64,000 bases of DNA, taken from Basidiobolus meristosporus CBS 931.73. Its lineage: Eukaryota > Fungi > Basidiobolomycota. Positions 26,788 to 53,430 of this stretch are shown one piece after another; within the stretch, counting starts at the first letter, position 1; every line of letters starts with the position of its first letter. Made by a program: the position numbers and the translations under genes. The stretch lies in the NCBI GenBank assembly GCA_002104905.1, contig MCFE01000370.1, positions 1 to 64,000 on the forward strand. Direction: 5' to 3'. The notes below the pieces were generated by a model. The model saw only the letters and a program-made list of their open reading frames with translations. It had not been told where the DNA came from and ran no database searches.

Positions 26788-29700
26788 ATGACCACCCTTG
26801 ATACTGCCAAGAATTACTCGTCAACCCTTGTTGGTATAGGGACTCAACTAGCACTTACAGCCACTGTGTCTGTGTTGAGTTTTGGCGCTTTCGAGATTCA
26901 TCGAAGATGGAAATTGACAAAGCATCTTTACATTCAACGTTGTAATTTAGAAAAGTAAGTGTTATGTCCAGCCAGGGTATAGAAATTCTTCTTATACAGA
27001 CCCTCTGCTATTTAGGAACCCGTCACCACTACCGTCGACTGCTCCATTTGGTTGGATATGGACGACTTTAACCATGAATGAGGAGTTTTATCTCACTCAC
27101 GTTGGCCTGGATGCGGCCATGTATATACGATATCTCAAAATGGCATTCCAGCTTATGCTATTTAGCTCCGTTATTATCGGTGCAATAGTATTACCGCTAA
27201 ACTTCTTTGCTGCTCAAACGGATCTTGGCGAAATCGAAAAGGTTTCTATAAGAAACGTCCCCGATGGATCCAAAATGCTCTGGGTGCATTGTTTAATGAC
27301 GCATTTCTTCTCCTTCTATACGCTATATCTTTTGTACAAAAATAGCAGAGATCAAGCGTATCTTCGCATAATCTACCTTCAGGCACAGGCCAGAAAAGGA
27401 TGTATACATACTCGTACGGTGATGGTAACCCATGTTCCTGAGACTTTAAGACATGAACAGCGCCTTAGGGAGTATATCAACAGCCTGGGTGCTGGTAGTG
27501 TGGATTCTGTTGTATTTGTCCGCCAGGTCAGCAAGCTCAGCCGTAAGATCAAGCGAAGAAATAGCACGCTGGATAAACTTGAGCGCTGTCACTTGCAACT
27601 AGCGTGCGGCTTGATCAAGGATTTGAGAAAAGAGAAGCGGAAAGTATTTGGCGACGCAGACATTGACCCGGAAAAAGTACGTAAATATAATGAAATTTCC
27701 GCGAAAATACTGTCCATGGTCGACAAAGCCAAATCCCAAGAACGCTTCCCCTTGCCAATAGCAAGCACAGCCACAACACCCGATATATGGGAGCTAATGT
27801 GTCAATTCGACCGCAGCCTGCTTGACAAATATCAGCCCAAACATGGAGCGGGGCTATTTCGTACCGGTCAGCCTAGAATAAGTATTGACTACCTCCTGAA
27901 GAAATTCAATCGACTGGAGCAGCGTATTGCCGAGTTGCGTTCGTTAACAGAAAGTGCCGGTTATTATAAGCCCACCGGGACTGCTTTTGTAACATTCGAA
28001 ACACAAGTATCAGCTCAATTATGTGCCCAAAGCATCATCTCTATGACTCCGGAGTCTTGTAAAACGCGCATGGCCCCGGAACCTCGTGACCTGATATGGA
28101 CCAACCTTACTTTCAATTCACAGCACAAGCTACTACGAAAGTTTTTGGTTAACTGCAGTGTGTGGTAAGTCTTGAGCAATTACCCTGATTGGAAGAATCG
28201 AATAGATTGACCATTTCTCTTGTATCTTAGGGCTCTTACAATCCTATGGTTATTCCCTTCAACATTCTTCGTCAGTTTGGCATCGTACAATCAAATCACT
28301 GCGAAGTGGCCGTGGTTTGAAGTAGTTGCCAAAGAAAACCCTTGGATACGAAATCTGATCGAAACCATGCTACCATCGATACTTATCTCTCTCTTTATGA
28401 TTGCGATGCCAAACATAATGCTAGGTATTTTCAAACAGTATTCCGCCAATTTCAAATCACTGTGCTTAAAGGTTGTCATTTCATAGCTCTATCCTCCTTC
28501 GATAGCTTTTCGTCACACTCGCAGTTGGAATTTGCGTCGATCAATCGTTATTACCGCTTTGCAATCTTCAACGTCTTGTTTGTATTTCTTCTAGGCAATA
28601 CCTTCATCAAGGTCATCCTTGCCATCATTCAGGCTCCTACAAGCATCTTTCAGGTCCTTGCTGAACACATCCCTAAGGTAGGAGTCGTATCGCTAACTTG
28701 CTAGCATCATCAGCTAACCTGTCACTTGAAGGGTGCAGCATTTTTCATCAACTATGTGATACTTCAAACCTGTTCACATGGCCTTGAAATTCTTCAAGTG
28801 GGCGCTCCTCTATTTCACTGCTATGCTTTCGCTAATTCTTGGGTCTCCAAAACGCCGCGTGACTTACAGACACATAGAAAGCCTTGGCCATTTCCATTCT
28901 ATTATTATCTTCCCACCCATATTCTCGTTTTGGTTATATGCATCACCTACTCCATAATCAATCCTTTGATTCTTTTCTTTGGGACTATATATTTTGGAAT
29001 CGCCATTCTTGTTTATAAGTATCAGTTTGCCTATGCTTACGTGAAGAGCTATGAAGCAAATGGCAAGATTTGGAAATACATTTTCCGATATGTAGGTCAC
29101 GGCCTTATCATATTCCAGATTACAATGCTGGGCCTGATTTCTCTCAAGAACTCGTTTGTCTCTGCTATGACGTTGATTCCATTGATTGGATGCACCATCT
29201 ACTTCATGTACATTTGCCGAAGCACATACCGGGGCCACACAAAATACGTACCACTTGATGCACTCTATGAGCGCGAAGAAGCCATGGAGAACATGTGCTC
29301 GAACACTTTCAAAGCAGCACCGAACACCAGCACCACTTCAGGCGACGCTGGTAAATGCGATGTATCTTCTCCTCGAAGCTCAAGGTCAACTTTCTCAAGT
29401 GACCCCACTGCACCCTTGGTGACAGATATCTCGAACAACACCTCAGACAAGGTCACTGATACTAAGAGTAAGAGTGATGAGGCCATGGCATGCGAGCCCA
29501 GTATTGAAGGAATAACGGTTCCGAAACGGCGTGTTGCCTGTCCTGGAAATGAACCAATTGCAGTTGGCACATATCCATTACCATCGGCCAGCTCTTCCTA
29601 TCACAAACCTTTGGAATTGGATATGAAATCCCCCGTCAAACAGAAGTTAGCCAAAATCCAGCAACAAATACTGTCTTCTCCGTTGCTTTCGCTTCTGTGG

Positions 29701-30384
29701 CAACTGCCCACGGGCCATGGCCATGCCGTCCATCCCCACATTGATCCCACAAAGATCCCCACCATTCCTGTCCTTGCCAACAGAGAGATCCACCAGGACG
29801 ATACAAACCCATATGAAACATATCTTCATCCTGATCTTATCAGACCGTTGCCTAGGTATCTCTGGCTTCCCCAAAACCCGTTCCGGCATTTGTACAACTT
29901 GGACAGGGAGATATTTGATTTGGAGTCCGCGATTACCTCCTCTGTGTTTGTACCCTCCTCGTTGGGCGGGGATTCTACTCTCGGCTTCCGAGGCCACATC
30001 GTCCCGTCCACGCGGCGAGCGCGCACTGTGCGGGACACGTCCCATGCAACTACCAAGCTGCCGTTCCTGCTTAATACTGTGCGGTCCATGACACGAAAGC
30101 AAAGTGCCGCCGATGAGACTGGAAAGTTTCAGACGGATCCTGCCGACATTTCTGAGACTGTAACCATGTCCCGCAGCAGGCCAGTTTCTGGTCTGATGAA
30201 TTTAATTCGGTCATACTCGTGGAGACCCATAGCCGAGGGTGAAATGTCCAGCATGCCACGCTCCATAAGTATGACAGAGTTTCCAGAGCACCTTGACGAC
30301 GAAGCGCATAGTGAACATGCCATGAATATTGAAGACGGCGAATATTCACCACGAAGCTCAATCTCTAGTGGCAGAAGCGTCTAA
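26788..30384 (+). CDS. OSCA/TMEM63/CSC1 (DUF221, Rsn1-like) mechanosensitive cation channel, multi-exon
   Basis: GLDAAMYIRYLKM, LWVHCL, TRTVMVTHVP, TGTAFVTFET, MAPEPRDLIWTNL, AAFFINYVILQ, YSIINPLILFFG..YKYQFAYAY, YEANGKIW. Confidence 0.92.
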
Positions 30385-46390: not shown

Positions 46391-46696
46391 CGTCTTGGAA
46401 ATAGTTCCAAACGAGGAAAGAGCAGAATTACTGGTTAGAGGGATGGAAGCCAGGCAAAGTAGGAAATTCACAAAACCGGAGAAAACTCCTCTTTTGCACT
46501 CTACTAAATAAGTAAATACTTTGGTCGAGAATTCCAAAGATGGTGATAATCACTGGTAAGCAACCTGGGTGCATTTTTCTGAATAATGACCGTCGCTTCG
46601 CGTCCTGATTGGCGGGGACCGAGTTTACATCATCACCGTTTGGTATAAATAGGTGTAGCACACCAGGTAAAAATGCAACCTCCTTTGATTACTAAA

Positions 46697-47503
46697 ATGT
46701 CCAACAACATCTGCCGCTTCGAAGACCAAACTCACACCATTGCTGAAGGTGGTGACCATCATGGACACAGCCACGACCACGCCGCTGCCCATGATCACGG
46801 ACACACCCATGAGCAATTGGACCATCCTGGTAAATTCAACCAGCGTGATCCCCCTCAATATCACCGTAGAGATTGGAGCGAACGTGCATTCACCGTTGGT
46901 ATTGGTGGTCCCGTCGGTTCCGGCAAGACCGCCTTGATGCTCTCCCTCTGCAGAGCTCTTCGTGAGTCCTACAACATTGCCTGTGTCACCAACGATATCT
47001 TCACTAAGGAGGATACCGAATTCTTGGTCCGTAACGAGGCTCTTCCTAGAGAGCGTATCCGTGCCATCGAAACTGGTGGTTGCCCCCACGCTGCCATCCG
47101 TGAGGATGTTTCCGCCAACATGAACGCCTTGGAGGAATTGCACGCCCAGTTCAACTGCGAGCTCTTGTTGATTGAATCTGGTGGTGATAACCTTGCCGCC
47201 AACTACTCCCGTGAATTGGCCGATTACATCATCTACGTTATTGATGTTGCCGGTGGTGACAAGGTCCCTAGAAAGGGTGGACCAGGTATCACCCAATCCG
47301 ACCTCCTCGTCATCAACAAGACCGATCTTGCCCCTATTGTTGGTGCTGATTTGGATGTCATGGCCAGAGATGCCAAGAAGATGCGTGATGATGGACCCAC
47401 CGTTTTCGCTCAGGTCAAGAACGGACCTGGTTTGCAGGAAATCATTCAACACATCTTGGCTGCCTGGGAGACTAGCGGTGCTAAGGCTGCCAGCAAGCAA
47501 TAA
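46697..47503 (+). CDS. ureG: Urease accessory GTPase UreG with a His-rich N-terminus, single exon
   Basis: [92 protein letters not shown]. An alternative ATG exists at 46673. Confidence 0.97.
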
Positions 47504-47768: not shown

Positions 47769-48677
47769 TTACCTAGTCTCTTTGTCAGCGTGTCTTTGGG
47801 CTTCCTTGGCGGCTTGGTTCGCCTTTTCTTGAGGCGATTCATATTTAGCTTTTGGCTTGGGTGGCTCGGCTGGTGTTTTGATTTGATTCACTGCGCTCTG
47901 TGCGCTGCTCTTCACCCCTCCTGCAACCTCCTCAGCATACTCCTTCACCTGCTCCCCTCTGCTCTTGATCCCTTCACTCACCGATCTGGCTGCATCCCCG
48001 GCCTCTTTTTGTGCCTTACCAACCACCTTGCCTGCGTACTCTCCGGCCTGACGAAGTGCTGGCTCGGCGTCTCCCATCACCTCATTCGCCTTTGCTTGGG
48101 CGGATGCTGCTGCATCGGTCGCCTCTCTCTTCACTCCTTCCGCCCCGGCTCTGGCTCCATTCGCTGCTTGATTGGCCCTCAGTTCTGCCTCGCTGAGTGC
48201 CTTGTTCACCCCATGCTTGATCTTCGATTGCTGGCTCTCGACGAACTGCTGGCCAGTCTCCTTTCCTTGCTCCACCCTGGCCTTCACCTCGTTCGTCACG
48301 TTCTTCGCCTTGATCTGTGTCTGCTCAGCAACCTGGTTGACCGTCTCCGTGGCCTTCTTGGCGACATTCTCGGACTGGTCGATCGCGTTGGCCAGCTTCT
48401 CGCCCGTTGCTTGGTTCAGCTTGTTCGCTGCCTCTTGCACTTTGCTGGCGGTGTTCGACAGAGTCTCTTGGATCTTGGAGACCACGGTTTGCTTTTCCTG
48501 TGGCAATGATTGGGGTGGGATGGGTTAGCACATGGAAAGGAGGAAGCAAGCGAAGCAAGGACCACTAACCAAGACCTGGGCGTTGGTGTGGAACAGGCGA
48601 GGGGTATTTGCGGAGACTCGCACGGAGGTCAACATCCCGTACTGGGAGAGAGATTGGAGGAAAGTTCTGGATGTCAT
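47769..48677 (-). CDS. LEA-like amphipathic repeat protein with a predicted mitochondrial presequence, copy A (278 aa; exons 48677-48570 and 48497-47769)
   Basis: MTSRTFLQSLSQYGMLTSVRVSANTPRLFHTNAQVL, then GTTAGT..CTAAC..CAG intron, then A/K/E/Q-rich body lacking C and W with roughly 11-residue periodicity. Confidence 0.8.
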
Positions 48678-48680
48678 ATT
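47882..48680 (-). repeat. Left arm of a 799-bp inverted repeat
   Basis: Reverse complement of 49361-50159. Paired coordinates sum to 98041 throughout, so there are no indels; 7 substitutions by manual comparison. Confidence 0.95.
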
Positions 48681-49360
48681 TACGAAAGAAACACTTTACA
48701 CTCGAGAAGGAAAAATTAACAATGCAGTTGGAGTGGGCATGTTGGTAGTTATATAGGCTCACTCGGTGGGTTCAAGAACTACAACGTCACTGCCAGCGTC
48801 TGACCGCCACCAACCAAGCCAGTCGTGAATCATCACTCTGTTTGGGTGAAGTCGATTTCTCGAGCCGTGTCGAGTGAATGGTTACTCCAGCATGACTGCA
48901 CCGCCTTTCCCGATTAGGACCTACGTGCGTCAAGATGAACGAAGGGATGATGGTGATTTCGAGGGGACAGATTGGCCAGAGTTTCGGGACCGGCTCCTAC
49001 TTTCATGGGTGGTACTCACGTTGTAGGAGGCAACCTTAGCTTCACCTCCAAATTGGTCGACCACTGTGATTTGAATTACCGCCCTGCCAACTACGCATAT
49101 ACCCTCTGTAAGAGGAGGCTCTCATCATATACGATAGGGTCGGGATTTAGAGTGGTCGATTGCGTGATGCTGATGTATTTCCTAGTGACGTCAATGGGGA
49201 TGATGACAGTTAGGTGCTACATTAAAGTGTAGACCCAACGAACCTGACGGAAATGGGATGGAATCATGATGCACGGGTGAGGAGGTGTCAGGCGCATAAA
49301 TAATCGGAGGTTGATGGGCAGCATACAGCAATACATCGAATTCATTCCTACAATCACAGC
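48681..49360. promoter_or_regulatory. Unique bidirectional promoter between the inverted arms
   Basis: TATATAA (minus strand, 48749-48755), CATAAATA (plus strand, 49295-49302), CRE palindrome TGACGTCA at 49186-49193, half-CRE at 48784-48789, STRE-like AGGGG at 48962-48966. Confidence 0.65.
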
Positions 49361-50159
49361 AATATGGCATCCAGAACTTTCCTCCAATCTCTCTCCCAGT
49401 ACGGGATGTTGACCTCCGTGCGAGTCTCCGCAAATACCCCTCGCCTGTTCCACACCAACGCCCAGGTCTTGGTTAGTGGCCCTTGCTTCGCTTGCTTCCT
49501 CCTTTCCATGTGCTAACCCACCCCACCCCAATCATTGCCACAGGAAAAGCAAACCGTGGTCTCCAAGATCCAAGAGACTCTGTCGAACACCGCCAGCAAA
49601 GTGCAAGAGGCAGCGAACAAGCTGAACCAAGCAACGGGTGAGAAGCTGGCCAACGCGATCGACCAGTCCGAGAATGTCGCCAAGAAGGCCACGGAGACGG
49701 TCAACCAGGTTGCTGAGGAGACACAGATCAAGGCGAAGAACGTGACGAACGAGGTGAAGGCCAGGGTGGAGCAAGGAAAGGAAACTGGCCAGCAGTTCGT
49801 CGAGAGCCAGCAATCGAAGATCAAGCATGGGGTGAACAAGGCGCTCAGCGAGGCAGAACTGAGGGCCAATCAAGCAGCGAATGGAGCCAGAGCCGGGGCG
49901 GAAGGAGTGAAGAGAGAGGCGACCGATGCAGCAGCATCCGCCCAAGCAAAGGCGAATGAGGTGATGGGAGACGCCGAGCCAGCACTTCGTCAGGCCGGAG
50001 AGTACGCAGGCAAGGTGGTTGGTAAGGCACAAAAAGAGGCCGGGGATGCAGCCAGATCGGTGAGTGAAGGGATCAAGAGCAGAGGGGAGCAGGTGAAGGA
50101 GTATGCTGAGGAGGTTGCAGGAGGGGTGAAGAGCAGCGCACAGAGCGCAGTGAATCAAA
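49361..50159 (+). repeat. Right arm of the 799-bp inverted repeat
   Basis: Begins 3 nt upstream of ATG 49364 and ends at ...GTGAATCAAA; includes the 72-nt intron. Confidence 0.95.
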
Positions 50160-50332
50160 CCAAACCACAAGTAGAGCAGGTCAGATCCGCGGTCAATCAA
50201 GGTAAAAAGGAAGCAACCAATACGGCGGCCCAAGTTACCGATCAAGCCCGGCAGGCGACCGAAAACGTTCAGCGAAAGGCCAAAGAGGCAGCCAAGGATG
50301 CCAAACACAAGGTAGATGAGTTCGCGCAATGA
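49364..50332 (+). CDS. LEA-like amphipathic repeat protein with a predicted mitochondrial presequence, copy B (298 aa; exons 49364-49471 and 49544-50332)
   Basis: MASRTFLQ...RLFHTNAQVL|EKQTVVSKIQETLS...; differs from copy A mainly in its unique 57-aa C-terminal tail. Confidence 0.8.
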
Positions 50333-50622
50333 GCACACCACCAATGTAATTACACACCGTCATACCATGTAGCAATAAACACAATACAAGGAATACTGTG
50401 ATATGGAGTATATTAGTTTGGGTAGTTTATATGAATTACCAGACAGTTCGAATTAGAGGATATGTTGAGGTAAGTATTGTTAAATGGTAAATGAAGGGAC
50501 TATCGCATGCAAGTCACGACGTTATTTCAAGATCAACAAGAGAAGTAAAGAAACCAATGGATGATGATGGGACGGAAAGGGTGAAGGTGAGGGTGTGGGT
50601 GATGGTGATGGAAGGGGTGCTG

Positions 50623-53430
50623 TTACAGAAAGCGCACTTCATCCACGCCCATGCTTCTTCTAACCTGGATGATGGAGACTATTTCTTTGATGGCTTCCTC
50701 CAGGATTATGACGTTGTCGACGAGTATACAGATTTCCTCCACTTTTACAGGAGGCGGTGGGATGCCTGCGAAGTCCGGCCCGCCATCAGAATCTTGTCCA
50801 TCAAAGGAATTCATGTTCTGCAAAAAGGAGCCATTGATAGGCACAGCATCGGCACTGGACGGTGCGAACAGGTCATCGTCTTCGTCGGAGTCCTCATTGA
50901 TCTTGACCATGGCGGACTTGATCTTGGCCGAGAAGGTTTCTCCGGTATTTCGACTCTCGAACAACGAAGCTCGACGCTCGCTCAACAACTGGTCGAAGTT
51001 GGGCACTTTGGATCGATAGTAAAGGACGTGCTGCGTGAGAATCCTCAACATCAGAAATATGGTGGGGTTCTTTGCCGGAATCGATGAATAGCTGGTTGCG
51101 GCGGTGGTAACACTGGCATTGCTGTAGGATTTAATGGATCTACTATCAGGCTCACAACCGTCCTCGCTGCGATCATCTTCCATATTCTCTTGATCTTGGA
51201 ATGAGGTATCCCCCAAGAAGTCTTCCGCTACCGGGGCTTGGGGCCGGATCTCAGTCATCTCCGGGAGAGTCAACCACCCTTCAAGTGAGCGGCAAGGGCA
51301 CGACGCCAGCGCAGATATGACTCCCGTCAGAGCCAGATTCAAATCGCAAGAATGGGCGAAGAACCTCGAAAGCAGATTCAGTAATATTTGAATCAGGGCA
51401 TCGGTTGGTTTAAGACTGTGCTTACAAACGGTGGCTTTCTCGTCTTTTTTGGCGTTTTCTTCTGACAGGGCGCTTGTCATCGTGGTGTCGTGGGGCTCTT
51501 CCTGATTGTTAAGGTACTTGACGTTCGATAGGTTTGGATGCTTCCTATATTTCCTGCCGATTCCCTTCTTTGCCACAAGGTTTCTATGTAGACGCTCATG
51601 TTCTTCGATCGTAAGCTCCACATCCAACAGGTAATTATCGTATCCCTTGGCCATAGCCATCTGATCGTGGTCCACATCAATGACAGAAAGCAGCGAAAGA
51701 TAAAGATCCAAGATGTGAAGATGCGTATCAATGGACGAGAAGCGTTGATGTGGATGGCCTACGGAAAGTTGCTCGTCGCTCGAGCCCACCATCTCTTCAT
51801 CCACTTGGACCTCAAGCAAGTCAAGGGATTGCCGACAGTGGTGATTGAGCATCGTATGAAGAAGTTTCAGCGAAGCGGTCACAACGTGCTGCGAATTGGA
51901 TTTACAATTGGTGAAGATGAGATCCTTCATGTTGTAGGGAAGAATGGAAGATGACTCAAATCCAACAGAAACATCAACTGATCCAACGCTCGAGTGTAGA
52001 CTCTCAGCATCGGACTCCTTAACCGCAGTGAGCGAGGGAATTTGCGGGGGAAGCTTGTTGGGCTTTTCGAGCTTCTCCGCCTTTTCTTCTTCCGGCTCAT
52101 TTGTACCAGTATTCATCAGGTAGGTGACGATCATGTTATTCAGGTCTTGTTGCGTGATCGACCGAATCAAGACATCTATGTAAGTGATCACCGCAACGGC
52201 AGAGCCGTCGGTATCCGAGCATTCAAGCAAGGAGGGGTACAGGATGTTTTCAAGGAACAGTGTTTTGACATTCGAGAGCAGAGTGTTGCATATTCCCGAG
52301 CTTGGGCAACGGTCAAGGATTTCTTGGGTGAAGTTCAGATATTTCAGGAACAACTCCAGTTGAAATTTAAACTCTGGAGAGGATGTGGGCTCTGCATCCT
52401 CCAGATCCTCCTCGACAGCTGCCACACCATTCTGTCCAAGGCCGTTGTCTCTTGGCTTTCCATCTATGGTGGACGTTACTCGAAGCTTCCGAGGGAGCTG
52501 TGAATAAAAGGCGCCCAAACCAGCGGCAACAATGGTGCAAAAGTCACTGTTCTTGAGGATGAAGTCTCGCAAGGCTCCAGTGGCTAGCTCGATGATATAC
52601 AGTACAGAGTGACGCGTATAGTCTCCAGTTTTCCCCTCCTTGTGAATGAACATTAGTAGATACGAAAAGAGAACAAATTCGTATTCTGCTTTTGGCTCCG
52701 AGAGTTTGGAGGGCGAATCTGGTCGGTGTTCAATTTTTGAGAGACTGTAGAGCTTATTGGTAGTCTTCTGGGAAGTTGGTGTGGTCTTTTGCGGGGTTTT
52801 CAGCCATTCTTTATCGTGAAAAAAAATATGAAGCAGCTCGGGATACCCATGAATCTTGTAGCACAGGTTCCGCATGAGCTCCACAATCTCTTCAGAGTAA
52901 AGCTCATACTGGGTCCTCTCACTCATGCAGCTGTGAAGTAGCTTTAAGGTTGGGGCGTGAACAGCATGGTGAATCAGGAACTTGTCATCTAGCAAATTTA
53001 TCATGTTTGAAACAGCTCTAATGGTTTCCCCTCGAATTCCAGGTGGCACATCAGCCTCAGAAAGTTGTACCAGTGAATCGATAATGTTGTTCTTCAGGGC
53101 ATACTCCATGCATGCACCAGTAGTCCCCTCATCAGTTCGAATTTCCTCTTGCACCAAGGTATCTATCATTAACTTTACCAATTCGGTTAAACTATTATCT
53201 TTAATTATCGCCTCTTTCTTTCTGTTTTCCAAGAGCTGGGCCTATCCACCAATGTTGAGAAGGAGGAAAAGTCAACTGTTAGTTGTGCAGACGAGCAACA
53301 ATTTGGCCTAAAGAAGAATGCTCACTTGACAGGAAGTCCAGTATTTCTGGAACTTCGCCAGCTGTACAGCGCCTGTGGGTTGCGGCTTAACACCTATCAC
53401 TTTTTGTTTGAGCCTTGTAAAATAGTCCAT
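50623..53430 (-). CDS. FHIP/FAM160 (FTS-Hook-interacting, RAI16-like) protein, 2 exons
   Basis: GTTGACMEYALKNNIIDSLV, LCYKIHGYPELLHIFF, EFVLFSYLLMFIHKEGKTGDYTR, FLENILYPSLLE, NLALTGVISALASCP, NVIILEEAIKEIVSIIQVRRS. Confidence 0.88.

Follow-up and report, generated by a model that had tools for sequence, protein, structure and literature searches.

A head-to-head gene pair in Basidiobolus meristosporus on a 799-nt inverted repeat, with a 5′ part probably homogenised by gene conversion

Introduction

Primate X/Y palindromes and the close inverted duplicates of C. elegans have arms that are more than 99% identical, enclose a unique spacer and undergo intrachromosomal conversion. Arm-to-arm conversion in palindromes and inverted paralogues, together with the GC enrichment of X-palindrome arms, has been reported (PMC8327919, PMC8981503, PMC8600007, PMC3194840). 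The same recombination is also known to invert the spacer that lies between the arms, an effect that is mostly neutral (PMC8327919). In fimS-type bacterial invertible promoters and the yeast 2-micron FLP system, inverted repeats likewise flank a segment whose orientation is decisive; these repeats are short, a dedicated site-specific recombinase acts on them, and both orientations have been observed.

Among proteins, pea LEAM and Artemia AfrLEA3m are mitochondrial group-3 LEA proteins. The tardigrade representatives HeLEA1 and RvLEAM combine a cleavable N-terminal targeting sequence of about 30-40 residues with a hydrophilic, Ala/Lys/Glu/Gln-rich amphipathic helix of 11-residue periodicity, and HeLEA1 is localised in the matrix and binds inner-membrane-like lipids (PMC10808001). 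Exchangeable apolipoproteins (PF01442) also form long amphipathic helices, with an 11/22-residue periodicity.

In the present study, we analysed a divergent gene pair of Basidiobolus meristosporus CBS 931.73 within a window of 64,000 nucleotides (contig MCFE01000370.1, positions 1 to 64,000). The pair shares with the animal palindromes its arms of about 99% identity and its unique spacer. It differs from the primate palindromes in being about 100 times smaller (0.8-kb arms and a 0.68-kb spacer) and in lying in a zygomycete-grade fungus and not on a sex chromosome. Moreover, its arms leave part of each gene uncovered, unlike the palindromes compared, so that the promoters and C-termini remain distinct. 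In contrast to the fimS and FLP systems, the gene bodies themselves form its repeats, the window ORFs scanned (at least 250 aa) yielded no recombinase, and a single orientation has been seen.

Results

Gene models and neighbouring genes

The sequence supported the gene models and the head-to-head layout that had been proposed in an earlier note on this DNA, with the two genes transcribed divergently. The models and the flanking genes are as follows:

47769..48677, minus strand: left gene, 278 aa; exon 1 at 48677-48570 (36 codons), exon 2 at 48497-47769 (242 codons and TAA)
48569-48498, minus strand: left-gene intron, 72 nt, GTTAGT...CTAAC...CAG, phase 0
49364..50332, plus strand: right gene, 298 aa; exon 1 at 49364-49471, exon 2 at 49544-50332 (262 codons and TGA)
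49472-49543, plus strand: right-gene intron, 72 nt, phase 0
46673..47503, plus strand: flanking UreG, a urease accessory GTPase (Pfam scan), which served as locus anchor
50623..53232, minus strand: long ORF of a flanking RAI16-like/DUF5917 protein (Pfam scan)

The ORFs near the locus were of housekeeping types in the Pfam scan (UreG, RAI16-like, importin-alpha, Sec62, PPR and similar), and no recombinase, integrase or transposase domain was detected by Pfam among window ORFs of at least 250 aa. Two ORFs of 239 and 270 aa that cross the arms in antisense are not regarded as genes, since a purine-rich coding strand yields such Leu/Cys-rich frames as a by-product. Neither gene of the pair matched itself in the protein collections searched, and public annotation therefore lends no support to their expression. 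An exact look-up of both exon-2 products and of UreG, entered as typed ORFs, found them absent from the protein collection. Both genes of the pair are apparently unannotated in public sets.

The inverted repeat

The pair is built on two inverted arms around a unique spacer:

47882..48680, minus strand: left arm (putative converted tract), spanning the left gene from 3 nt ahead of its ATG as far as codon 242; 7 substitutions relative to the right arm
49361..50159, plus strand: right arm (putative converted tract), with the same content for the right gene; 7 substitutions relative to the left arm
48681..49360, no strand: spacer of 680 nt with both 5′UTRs and promoters, unique by blastn within the window

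Base-by-base comparison showed that the arms form an inverted repeat of 799 nt with seven mismatches (six transitions and one transversion) and zero indels, exactly as the earlier note had counted, and blastn gave an identity of 99.124% between them. The repeat search drew the arms slightly longer, at 47864-48680 and 49361-50177 (817 nt, 99% complementary, 680 nt between). No other repeat of at least 80 nt was present in the whole 64-kb window, which places this inverted repeat far beyond chance. Each arm starts with the 'AAT' ahead of the ATG and runs through exon 1, the intron and exon 2 as far as codon 242. Codon comparison reproduced the claimed split of the seven differences: two are intronic (positions 9 and 50 of 72), three are synonymous (codons 68, 116 and 136), and two change residues (T2/A2 and Q95/E95). 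The abrupt edges of identity, claimed at 3 nt before each ATG and after about 241 codons, were also found, with the shared stretch ending in codon 242. On the spacer side the identity fell at once to background (3-6 matches per 18-20 nt), and on the 3′ side it fell to 13/18, with background after that. The claimed uniqueness of the 680-bp spacer held within the window.

The introns of the two copies were identical at 70 of 72 positions, on par with the exons. Divergence between the arms was 0.018 at synonymous sites (pS; 3 differences at 166 sites), 0.028 in the intron and 0.0036 at replacement sites (pN), where pS and pN were counted over exon 1 and the converted part of exon 2 joined, which equals the per-exon sum since the intron is in phase 0. 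The last 317 nt at the 3′ end of the arms were free of differences, which was not significant (P=0.23). The spacing of the seven differences thus gave no significant sign of a mosaic of several conversion events.

The diverged tails

Beyond the arms, the two reading frames continue into tails of unequal length:

47769..47881, minus strand: left unconverted tail, 37 aa and stop, with a Pro-rich start; about 51% nucleotide identity to the right tail
50160..50332, plus strand: right unconverted tail, 57 aa and stop, delimited by the tail alignment
50202..50261, plus strand: in-frame segment of 60 nt in the right tail only, under the best single-gap model, with the gap after tail nt 42

A single in-frame gap of 60 nt aligned the tails from the boundary to their stops with 58 matches in 113 positions, whereas shuffled tails gave 39.6±4.0 matches and none of 5000 shuffles reached 58. 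In this alignment the stop codons occupy homologous positions. The first 18 nt past the 3′ boundary match in register at 13 positions (P=1e-4), so that the identity drops from 99% to about 70% there and not to random. At the protein level, the local score of tail against tail was 46 (shuffles 28±5, P~0.002), and no stretch of the protein body scored above 32 with the left tail, less than the right tail did. At the DNA level, 27 of 36 bases matched. These results bore out the claim that the tails differ (37 versus 57 aa) and nevertheless keep a remote similarity.

The spacer and its promoter elements

No similarity was detectable between the two halves of the spacer, the 5′ flanks aligning with a score of 16 against 17.8±2.1 for shuffles. 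Three candidate elements were located:

49186..49193, no strand: palindromic TGACGTCA, a candidate CRE/ATF-type site, with the right ATG 178 nt away and the left one 509 nt away
48750..48755, no strand: TATATA, a possible core promoter for the left gene, lying 73 nt ahead of its ATG
49296..49303, plus strand: ATAAATAA, read directly, a possible core promoter for the right gene, lying 68 nt ahead of its ATG

The positions of TGACGTCA agreed with the proposal that a full CRE lies closer to the right gene. Because the converted tract would begin exactly at the start codon, the whole promoters are left out of it.

Properties of the encoded proteins

The two proteins are rich in Ala (19%), Glu (12%), Lys (12%) and Gln (10%), with GRAVY values of -0.89 and -0.95. 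Peaks of self-similarity were observed at lags of 4, 7, 11, 14-15, 18, 22, 25, 29 and 33 residues, and the AlphaFold model predicted four long helices with a mean pLDDT of 72. For searches and folds the exons were used separately and not as joined-exon proteins. A matrix presequence is expected to be basic, hydroxylated and free of acidic residues, with Arg at -2/-3 of the cleavage site. Exon 1 (36 aa) contains three Arg, one His, nine Ser/Thr and no Asp or Glu, with R-V-S and R-L-F-H motifs. Hydrophilins are defined by more than 6% Gly and a hydrophilicity index above 1; the present proteins have 6.5-6.6% Gly and an index of 0.89-0.95, just under 1. With their hydrophilic character, entirely helical build, 11-residue period and basic N-terminus free of acidic residues, the proteins are LEA-3-like in kind.

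Family searches were performed with both proteins, and no Pfam family matched above threshold. LEA_4 (PF02987) gave no match to either protein even at E<=1. The top Pfam match was PF01442 (Apolipoprotein A1/A4/E), at 39.4 bits (E 6.8e-10) for one protein and 26.8 bits for the other, both far under the gathering cut-off of 90 bits. In the ESM Atlas, LEA_4, apolipoprotein and YtxH clusters came up as mere leads, all of them below 0.85. Nothing significant was found in the PDB sequence search, in NCBIfam or by Foldseek against the PDB, where the top apolipoprotein match was 3s84 (apoA-IV, E 1.6). The pair shares long amphipathic helices and 11/22-residue periodicity with the exchangeable apolipoproteins, but its scores lie far below the family cut-off, and the match most likely reflects a shared periodic composition and not descent.

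A HMMER search against 1.84 billion representative proteins gave four matches only, none of them to a LEA protein. P0001 was discarded as a relative, being a spurious repeat protein, and P0004 is a DUF3618 protein. P0002 (Panaeolus papilionaceus, 112 aa) and P0003 (Phascolomyces articulosus, 157 aa) are hypothetical proteins in their source records, with 39-40% identity over 53-76 residues and pairwise E values of 7e-13 and 7e-10. Like the Basidiobolus pair, they have a basic acid-free N-terminus followed by a block of the form K-x-N-x3-G-E/K-x-L-A-x-A/G-I-D-x2-E-x4-K-A; unlike the pair, they are much shorter, and their genes are not known to be paired. A profile search with this conserved N-terminal block added just three more small fungal or unnamed proteins. 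Exon 2 of the right gene, as query in a word-index protein search, yielded 4723 candidates, none at E<=1e-3 and none a self-hit. A metagenome scan with the LEA-like exon 2 detected zero relatives, and a scan with UreG detected 80 loci (top identity 79%), none with a relative of the gene pair. The detectable relatives are therefore a few small fungal hypothetical proteins.

Discussion

Origin of the near-identical arms

What is observed is the repeat with its edges, together with the homology of the tails and the identity of the introns; from this we infer conversion as the mechanism that made the arms alike. The earlier note had proposed an old duplication whose 5′ part was homogenised by gene conversion. 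The end-to-end homology of the tails, the 13/18 matches past the boundary and the intron identity together point to old whole-gene duplicates whose 5′ part was recently overwritten, which upholds that proposal. Judged from the sequence comparison, gene conversion is well supported, and a conversion-homogenised 5′ part in old inverted duplicates is highly probable. The whole ancestral gene would have been duplicated long ago into an inverted, head-to-head position, and its product would have been a hydrophilic, all-helical, 11-residue periodic protein with a presequence-like first exon of 36 residues. The promoters, 5′UTRs and C-terminal tails would then have diverged almost to saturation, and the tails would have gained the 60-nt in-frame indel. 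Recently, one or more events of intrachromosomal gene conversion would have copied 799 nt between the copies, from 3 nt before the ATG to codon 242, with about 2% divergence accumulating at silent sites since then. The limits of the tract would be those of usable homology, namely the unalignable 5′UTR on one side and a point 42 nt short of the tail indel on the other; the 60-nt indel was likely a homology barrier that halted the tract. The presumed outcome is a near-identical mature protein with two promoters and two C-terminal ends.

Three other explanations of the arms were weighed against conversion. A recent partial inverted duplication, in which a 799-nt piece of one gene was copied 680 nt upstream beside non-paralogous sequence, would suit the abrupt edges and the divergence of about 1%, both typical of a young segmental duplication, as well as the lack of homology between the spacer halves. 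It is very unlikely, however, in view of the homology past the 3′ boundary, where 13/18 positions match in register, a C-terminal block is similar and the stops align through the 60-nt indel; moreover, chance would have had to supply the new copy with a stop codon, a LEA-like tail in frame and a TATA-bearing promoter that stops precisely 3 nt short of its ATG. The adjoining coding tails are about 49% diverged, while the intron (70/72) and the synonymous sites (3/166) are as conserved as the replacement sites, and purifying selection on the protein cannot account for arms whose silent sites and intron have barely diverged. The idea that such selection alone, acting without conversion, kept the 5′ parts identical draws on a pN below pS that comes from five coding changes only; the near-identity of the intron and of the synonymous sites in effect already refutes it, and we assign it a vanishingly small probability.

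An assembly artefact, that is, one gene falsely doubled as a palindrome by a chimeric hairpin read or collapsed haplotypes, is extremely improbable given the seven arm differences, the distinct in-frame tails, the distinct promoters, the unique 680-nt spacer and the position of the pair in mid-contig between ordinary single-copy genes. In its favour, palindromic errors do arise in long-read assemblies, and both genes are missing from public protein sets. Repeat-induced point mutation (RIP) is known mainly from Dikarya, chiefly from filamentous ascomycetes, and is not known from the zygomycete-grade lineage studied here. As a concern for a 99% repeat it was set aside, because the genome is that of a Basidiobolus, the closest named UreG being the one of B. 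ranarum at 85%.

Can the spacer act as a promoter switch?

The earlier note had also suggested an invertible promoter. The topology for such a promoter swap is right, because both complete promoters and 5′UTRs lie in the spacer between the inverted arms, and a functional switch is not supported as a claim. In a functional switch, crossovers between the arms would invert the 680-nt spacer frequently or under regulation and would swap the pairing of promoters and tail isoforms. The arms starting 3 nt before each ATG and the unlike promoter halves, with TGACGTCA only on the right and differing TATA-like elements, are compatible with this, and spacers are known to be inverted when the arms of a palindrome recombine within a chromatid (PMC8327919). 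Nevertheless, no recombinase or transposase gene was seen among the window ORFs scanned, and untargeted homologous recombination would yield rare and unregulated flips. The differences between the isoforms would be confined to the final 37 or 57 residues of a helical protein of low complexity, and the best-studied spacer inversions are common and mostly neutral (PMC8327919). We consider that there is a slim chance that the spacer flips at measurable frequency in Basidiobolus cultures, with both promoter-tail combinations coexisting, and a slimmer one still that it serves as a functional switch. If true, spacer flipping would amount to a eukaryotic promoter swap that serves bet-hedging and needs no recombinase; the broader version would mean unusually active intrachromatid recombination in Basidiobolus that both homogenises and flips inverted gene pairs.

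Nature of the locus and its products

The designation "mitochondrial LEA-like" stood in part. The LEA-3-like physical features and the presequence-like exon 1 speak for it, and the lack of a LEA_4 or other Pfam match above threshold speaks against it. The exon-1 layout resembles that of the mitochondrial group-3 LEA proteins, as do the composition and the periodicity of the helix. The pair differs from them in having no LEA_4 match and no sequence relatives among LEA proteins in the 1.84 billion proteins searched. The presequence-like exon 1 suggests that the proteins may be imported into mitochondria, where a membrane- or protein-protecting stress role would be conceivable. The locus points to an apparently unannotated gene pair for a hydrophilic, probably mitochondrial helical protein.

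As a case of gene conversion, the locus is clean but ordinary, and of a kind already known. Its tract would be textbook-clean, with edges that can be explained mechanistically, one at the start of coding homology and the other just short of the 60-nt indel. The pair illustrates how paralogues may have a common protein body and yet separate promoters and C-termini. The GC content at third codon positions (GC3) was 0.68 in the converted part of the exons, compared with 0.56 in the neighbouring genes and with 0.54 and 0.46 in the two tails, which are short. The raised GC3 of the converted part fits GC-biased conversion, and could equally reflect the codon bias of a highly expressed gene.

Inverted Repeat and Gene Models

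The repeat search of the 64-kb window revealed a single inverted repeat (47864-48680 / 49361-50177), which was 99% complementary with arms 680 nt apart; no second repeat of at least 80 nt, direct or inverted, was found. Base-by-base comparison located the high-identity core at 47882-48680 versus 49361-50159 and counted 7 substitutions (6 transitions and 1 transversion) and no indels over 799 nt, so the figures of the earlier note for the repeat all held. The arm-versus-arm identity by blastn was 99.124%. At the spacer-side edge of the core, identity dropped immediately to background; past the outer (3') boundary, the first 18 nt still matched in register at 13 positions (P=1.2e-4), and beyond them only background remained. 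Both arms opened 3 nt ('AAT') upstream of an ATG, and the gene models were as follows.

Gene models of the head-to-head pair
49364-49471, + strand: right gene, exon 1, 36 codons
49472-49543, + strand: right gene, intron, 72 nt, phase-0, GTTAGT...CTAAC...CAG
49544-50332, + strand: right gene, exon 2
48677-48570, - strand: left gene, exon 1, mirror image of the right gene
48569-48498, - strand: left gene, intron
47769-48497, - strand (read 48497-47769): left gene, exon 2

The seven arm differences comprised two in the intron, three synonymous changes (codons 68, 116 and 136) and two replacements (T2/A2 and Q95/E95). The shared part ended in codon 242; beyond it, the left tail comprised 37 aa and the right tail 57 aa. 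Neither gene had a self-match among protein collections of 5.8 billion clusters and 1.84 billion representatives, although the neighboring UreG gene (46673-47503) matched its own record, P0006; thus, the pair seems to be absent from public annotation, perhaps because of repeat masking. Antisense ORFs lay opposite both genes (47790-48509, + strand, 239 aa; 49532-50344, - strand, 270 aa) and were Leu/Cys-rich. They were rejected as genes, since they arise from the composition of the purine-rich coding strand; gene callers might be misled by them.

A Probable Old Duplication and Recent Gene Conversion

Whether the two genes are old duplicates or one is a young partial copy is the central question, and the window sequence suffices to decide it. 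When the tails (left 47769-47881; right 50160-50332) were aligned with one in-frame 60-nt gap, corresponding to a segment of the right tail (50202-50261) absent from the left, the stop codons fell at homologous positions. This alignment contained 58 matches out of 113, compared with a mean of 39.6±4.0 in 5000 composition-preserving shuffles, none of which reached 58; the tails did retain the remote similarity previously proposed. A C-terminal tail block gave a local protein score of 46 (shuffles 28±5, P~0.002), above the maximum of 32 for the left tail compared with all windows of the protein body; in DNA, 27/36 bases were identical (P~0.002). Together with the 13/18 boundary matches, the tail alignment and this block show that the genes are homologous from ATG through stop.

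Divergence was about 49% in the tails and 0.9% in the arms. The introns were identical at 70 of 72 positions, and the converted coding part had a pS of 0.018 and a pN of 0.0036 (counted by script on exon 1 and converted exon 2 joined, which equals the per-exon sum given the phase-0 intron). Because the intron and synonymous sites were as alike as the replacement sites, selection on the protein was ruled out as the cause of the arm identity. The simplest history is an old inverted duplication of the whole gene, followed by recent gene conversion across the 5' 799 nt. Tail homology, boundary matches and intron identity all backed the earlier proposal of an old duplication homogenized in its 5' part.

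The ends of the tract make mechanistic sense. At its 5' end, the promoters and 5'UTRs of the two genes could not be aligned (score 16 versus shuffles 17.8±2.1); at its 3' end, it stopped 42 nt short of the 60-nt indel. A 317-nt difference-free run at the arm 3' end, used as a test of event number, was not significant (P=0.23). GC3 was 0.68 in the converted exon part (exon 2, 49544-50159) and 0.56 in neighboring genes, compared with 0.54 and 0.46 in the tails, which are short and give small samples. The raised GC3 may be a footprint of GC-biased conversion, with expression-linked codon bias as an alternative source. The locus joins a familiar class, in which inverted paralogues lying close together undergo gene conversion from palindrome arm to arm. 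Its distinctive features are a tract starting exactly at the start codon and stopping just ahead of an indel, and a tiny unnamed gene family with both genes apparently unannotated publicly.

Protein Properties and Relatives

The mature part of both proteins was strongly hydrophilic (GRAVY -0.89 and -0.95; A 19%, E 12%, K 12%, Q 10%, G 6.5%). Self-similarity peaked at lags 4, 7, 11, 14-15, 18, 22, 25, 29 and 33, consistent with amphipathic helices that have 3.67 residues per turn and an 11-residue pattern. AlphaFold on the single sequence predicted four long helices (mean pLDDT 72), and Foldseek returned no significant structural match in the PDB. With the exons searched separately, no family was matched above threshold in Pfam or NCBIfam: the only Pfam match, Apolipoprotein A1/A4/E, was sub-threshold (39 bits, cut-off 90), LEA_4 gave none even at E<=1, and the NCBIfam and PDB sequence searches yielded zero above threshold. 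ESM Atlas leads, all <0.85, pointed to LEA_4, apolipoprotein and YtxH-type clusters.

Exon 1 encoded 3 Arg, 1 His, no acidic residues and 9 Ser/Thr, with R-x-x cleavage-type motifs, and the intron lay at the exact border between exon 1 and the hydrophilic part. We consider mitochondrial targeting of the proteins reasonably probable. Group-3 LEA proteins of mitochondria, with tardigrade HeLEA1 as an example, reach the matrix and attach to lipids of the inner-membrane type (PMC10808001). In contrast to group-3 LEA proteins, the pair showed no LEA_4 membership; of the earlier label 'mitochondrial LEA-like', the LEA-3-like hydrophilic 11-residue helix and the presequence-like exon 1 stood, but the family match did not. 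'LEA-3-like, probably mitochondrial' is a fair functional analogy.

A word-index protein search detected no relatives. A full HMMER search against 1.84 billion representatives gave four matches, two of them credible.

Credible matches to the pair
P0002: Panaeolus papilionaceus, 112 aa, small fungal hypothetical protein
P0003: Phascolomyces articulosus, 157 aa, small fungal hypothetical protein

Both had a basic, acid-free, presequence-like N-terminus and shared with the Basidiobolus pair a block around G-E/K-x-L-A-x-A/G-I-D (extended, K-x-N-x3-G-E/K-x-L-A-x-A/G-I-D). A profile of this block recovered just three further small proteins, P0126 and P0128 (Mycena species) and P0127 (no source name). 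These five proteins formed a scattered unnamed family of about 100-160 aa, four of them from named fungi.

The Spacer and Its Promoters

The spacer held both entire promoters and both 5'UTRs.

Spacer elements
48750-48755: TATA-like element, left gene, 73 nt from the left ATG
49296-49303: TATA-like element, right gene, 68 nt from the right ATG
49186-49193: TGACGTCA, a full and perfect palindrome of ATF/CREB type, confined to the spacer's right half

The chance expectation for an 8-mer like TGACGTCA was about 0.01 per 680 nt, and this candidate site would fit a stress-MAPK/bZIP-regulated promoter. The earlier note had placed a full CRE nearer the right gene and an asymmetric promoter between the arms, and both descriptions were confirmed. 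With this topology, a crossover between the arms would swap which promoter drives which tail, and the note had suggested a potentially invertible promoter. Any inverted repeat allows such an exchange. Recombination within a chromatid both homogenizes the arms and turns the spacers around in primate X palindromes, where roughly half of the spacers are oriented differently in different species and most of these inversions are considered harmless (PMC8327919). The position of both whole promoters and 5'UTRs between the arms would fit a working switch, but only one spacer orientation was seen, no recombinase or transposase gene was found among the window ORFs of at least 250 aa scanned against Pfam, and the two products differ solely in a short low-complexity tail, Pro-rich at its start in the left protein and continuing as a predicted helix in the right. 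We regard a working promoter switch as very improbable; occasional spacer flips over evolutionary time seem quite possible.

Neighborhood

Two metagenome scans, with exon 2 of the pair and with UreG, yielded no relative of the locus. The nearest named relative of UreG was from Basidiobolus ranarum (85% identity), followed by other zygomycete-grade fungi (70-77%), which places the genome in Basidiobolus. The UreG ORF of the window comprised 276 codons from the first ATG versus 268 aa on record for P0006, so annotation apparently begins at a later Met. The N-terminus was rich in His, a usual trait of nickel-binding UreG. The surrounding genes were ordinary (RAI16-like, importin-alpha, Sec62, PPR proteins, RPL4, a DEAD-box helicase and an RSN1/PHM7 channel). 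At 27074-30384, two adjoining long ORFs carried RSN1_TM/PHM7_cyt and RSN1_7TM domains and are probably exons of a single OSCA/TMEM63-type osmosensitive channel gene.
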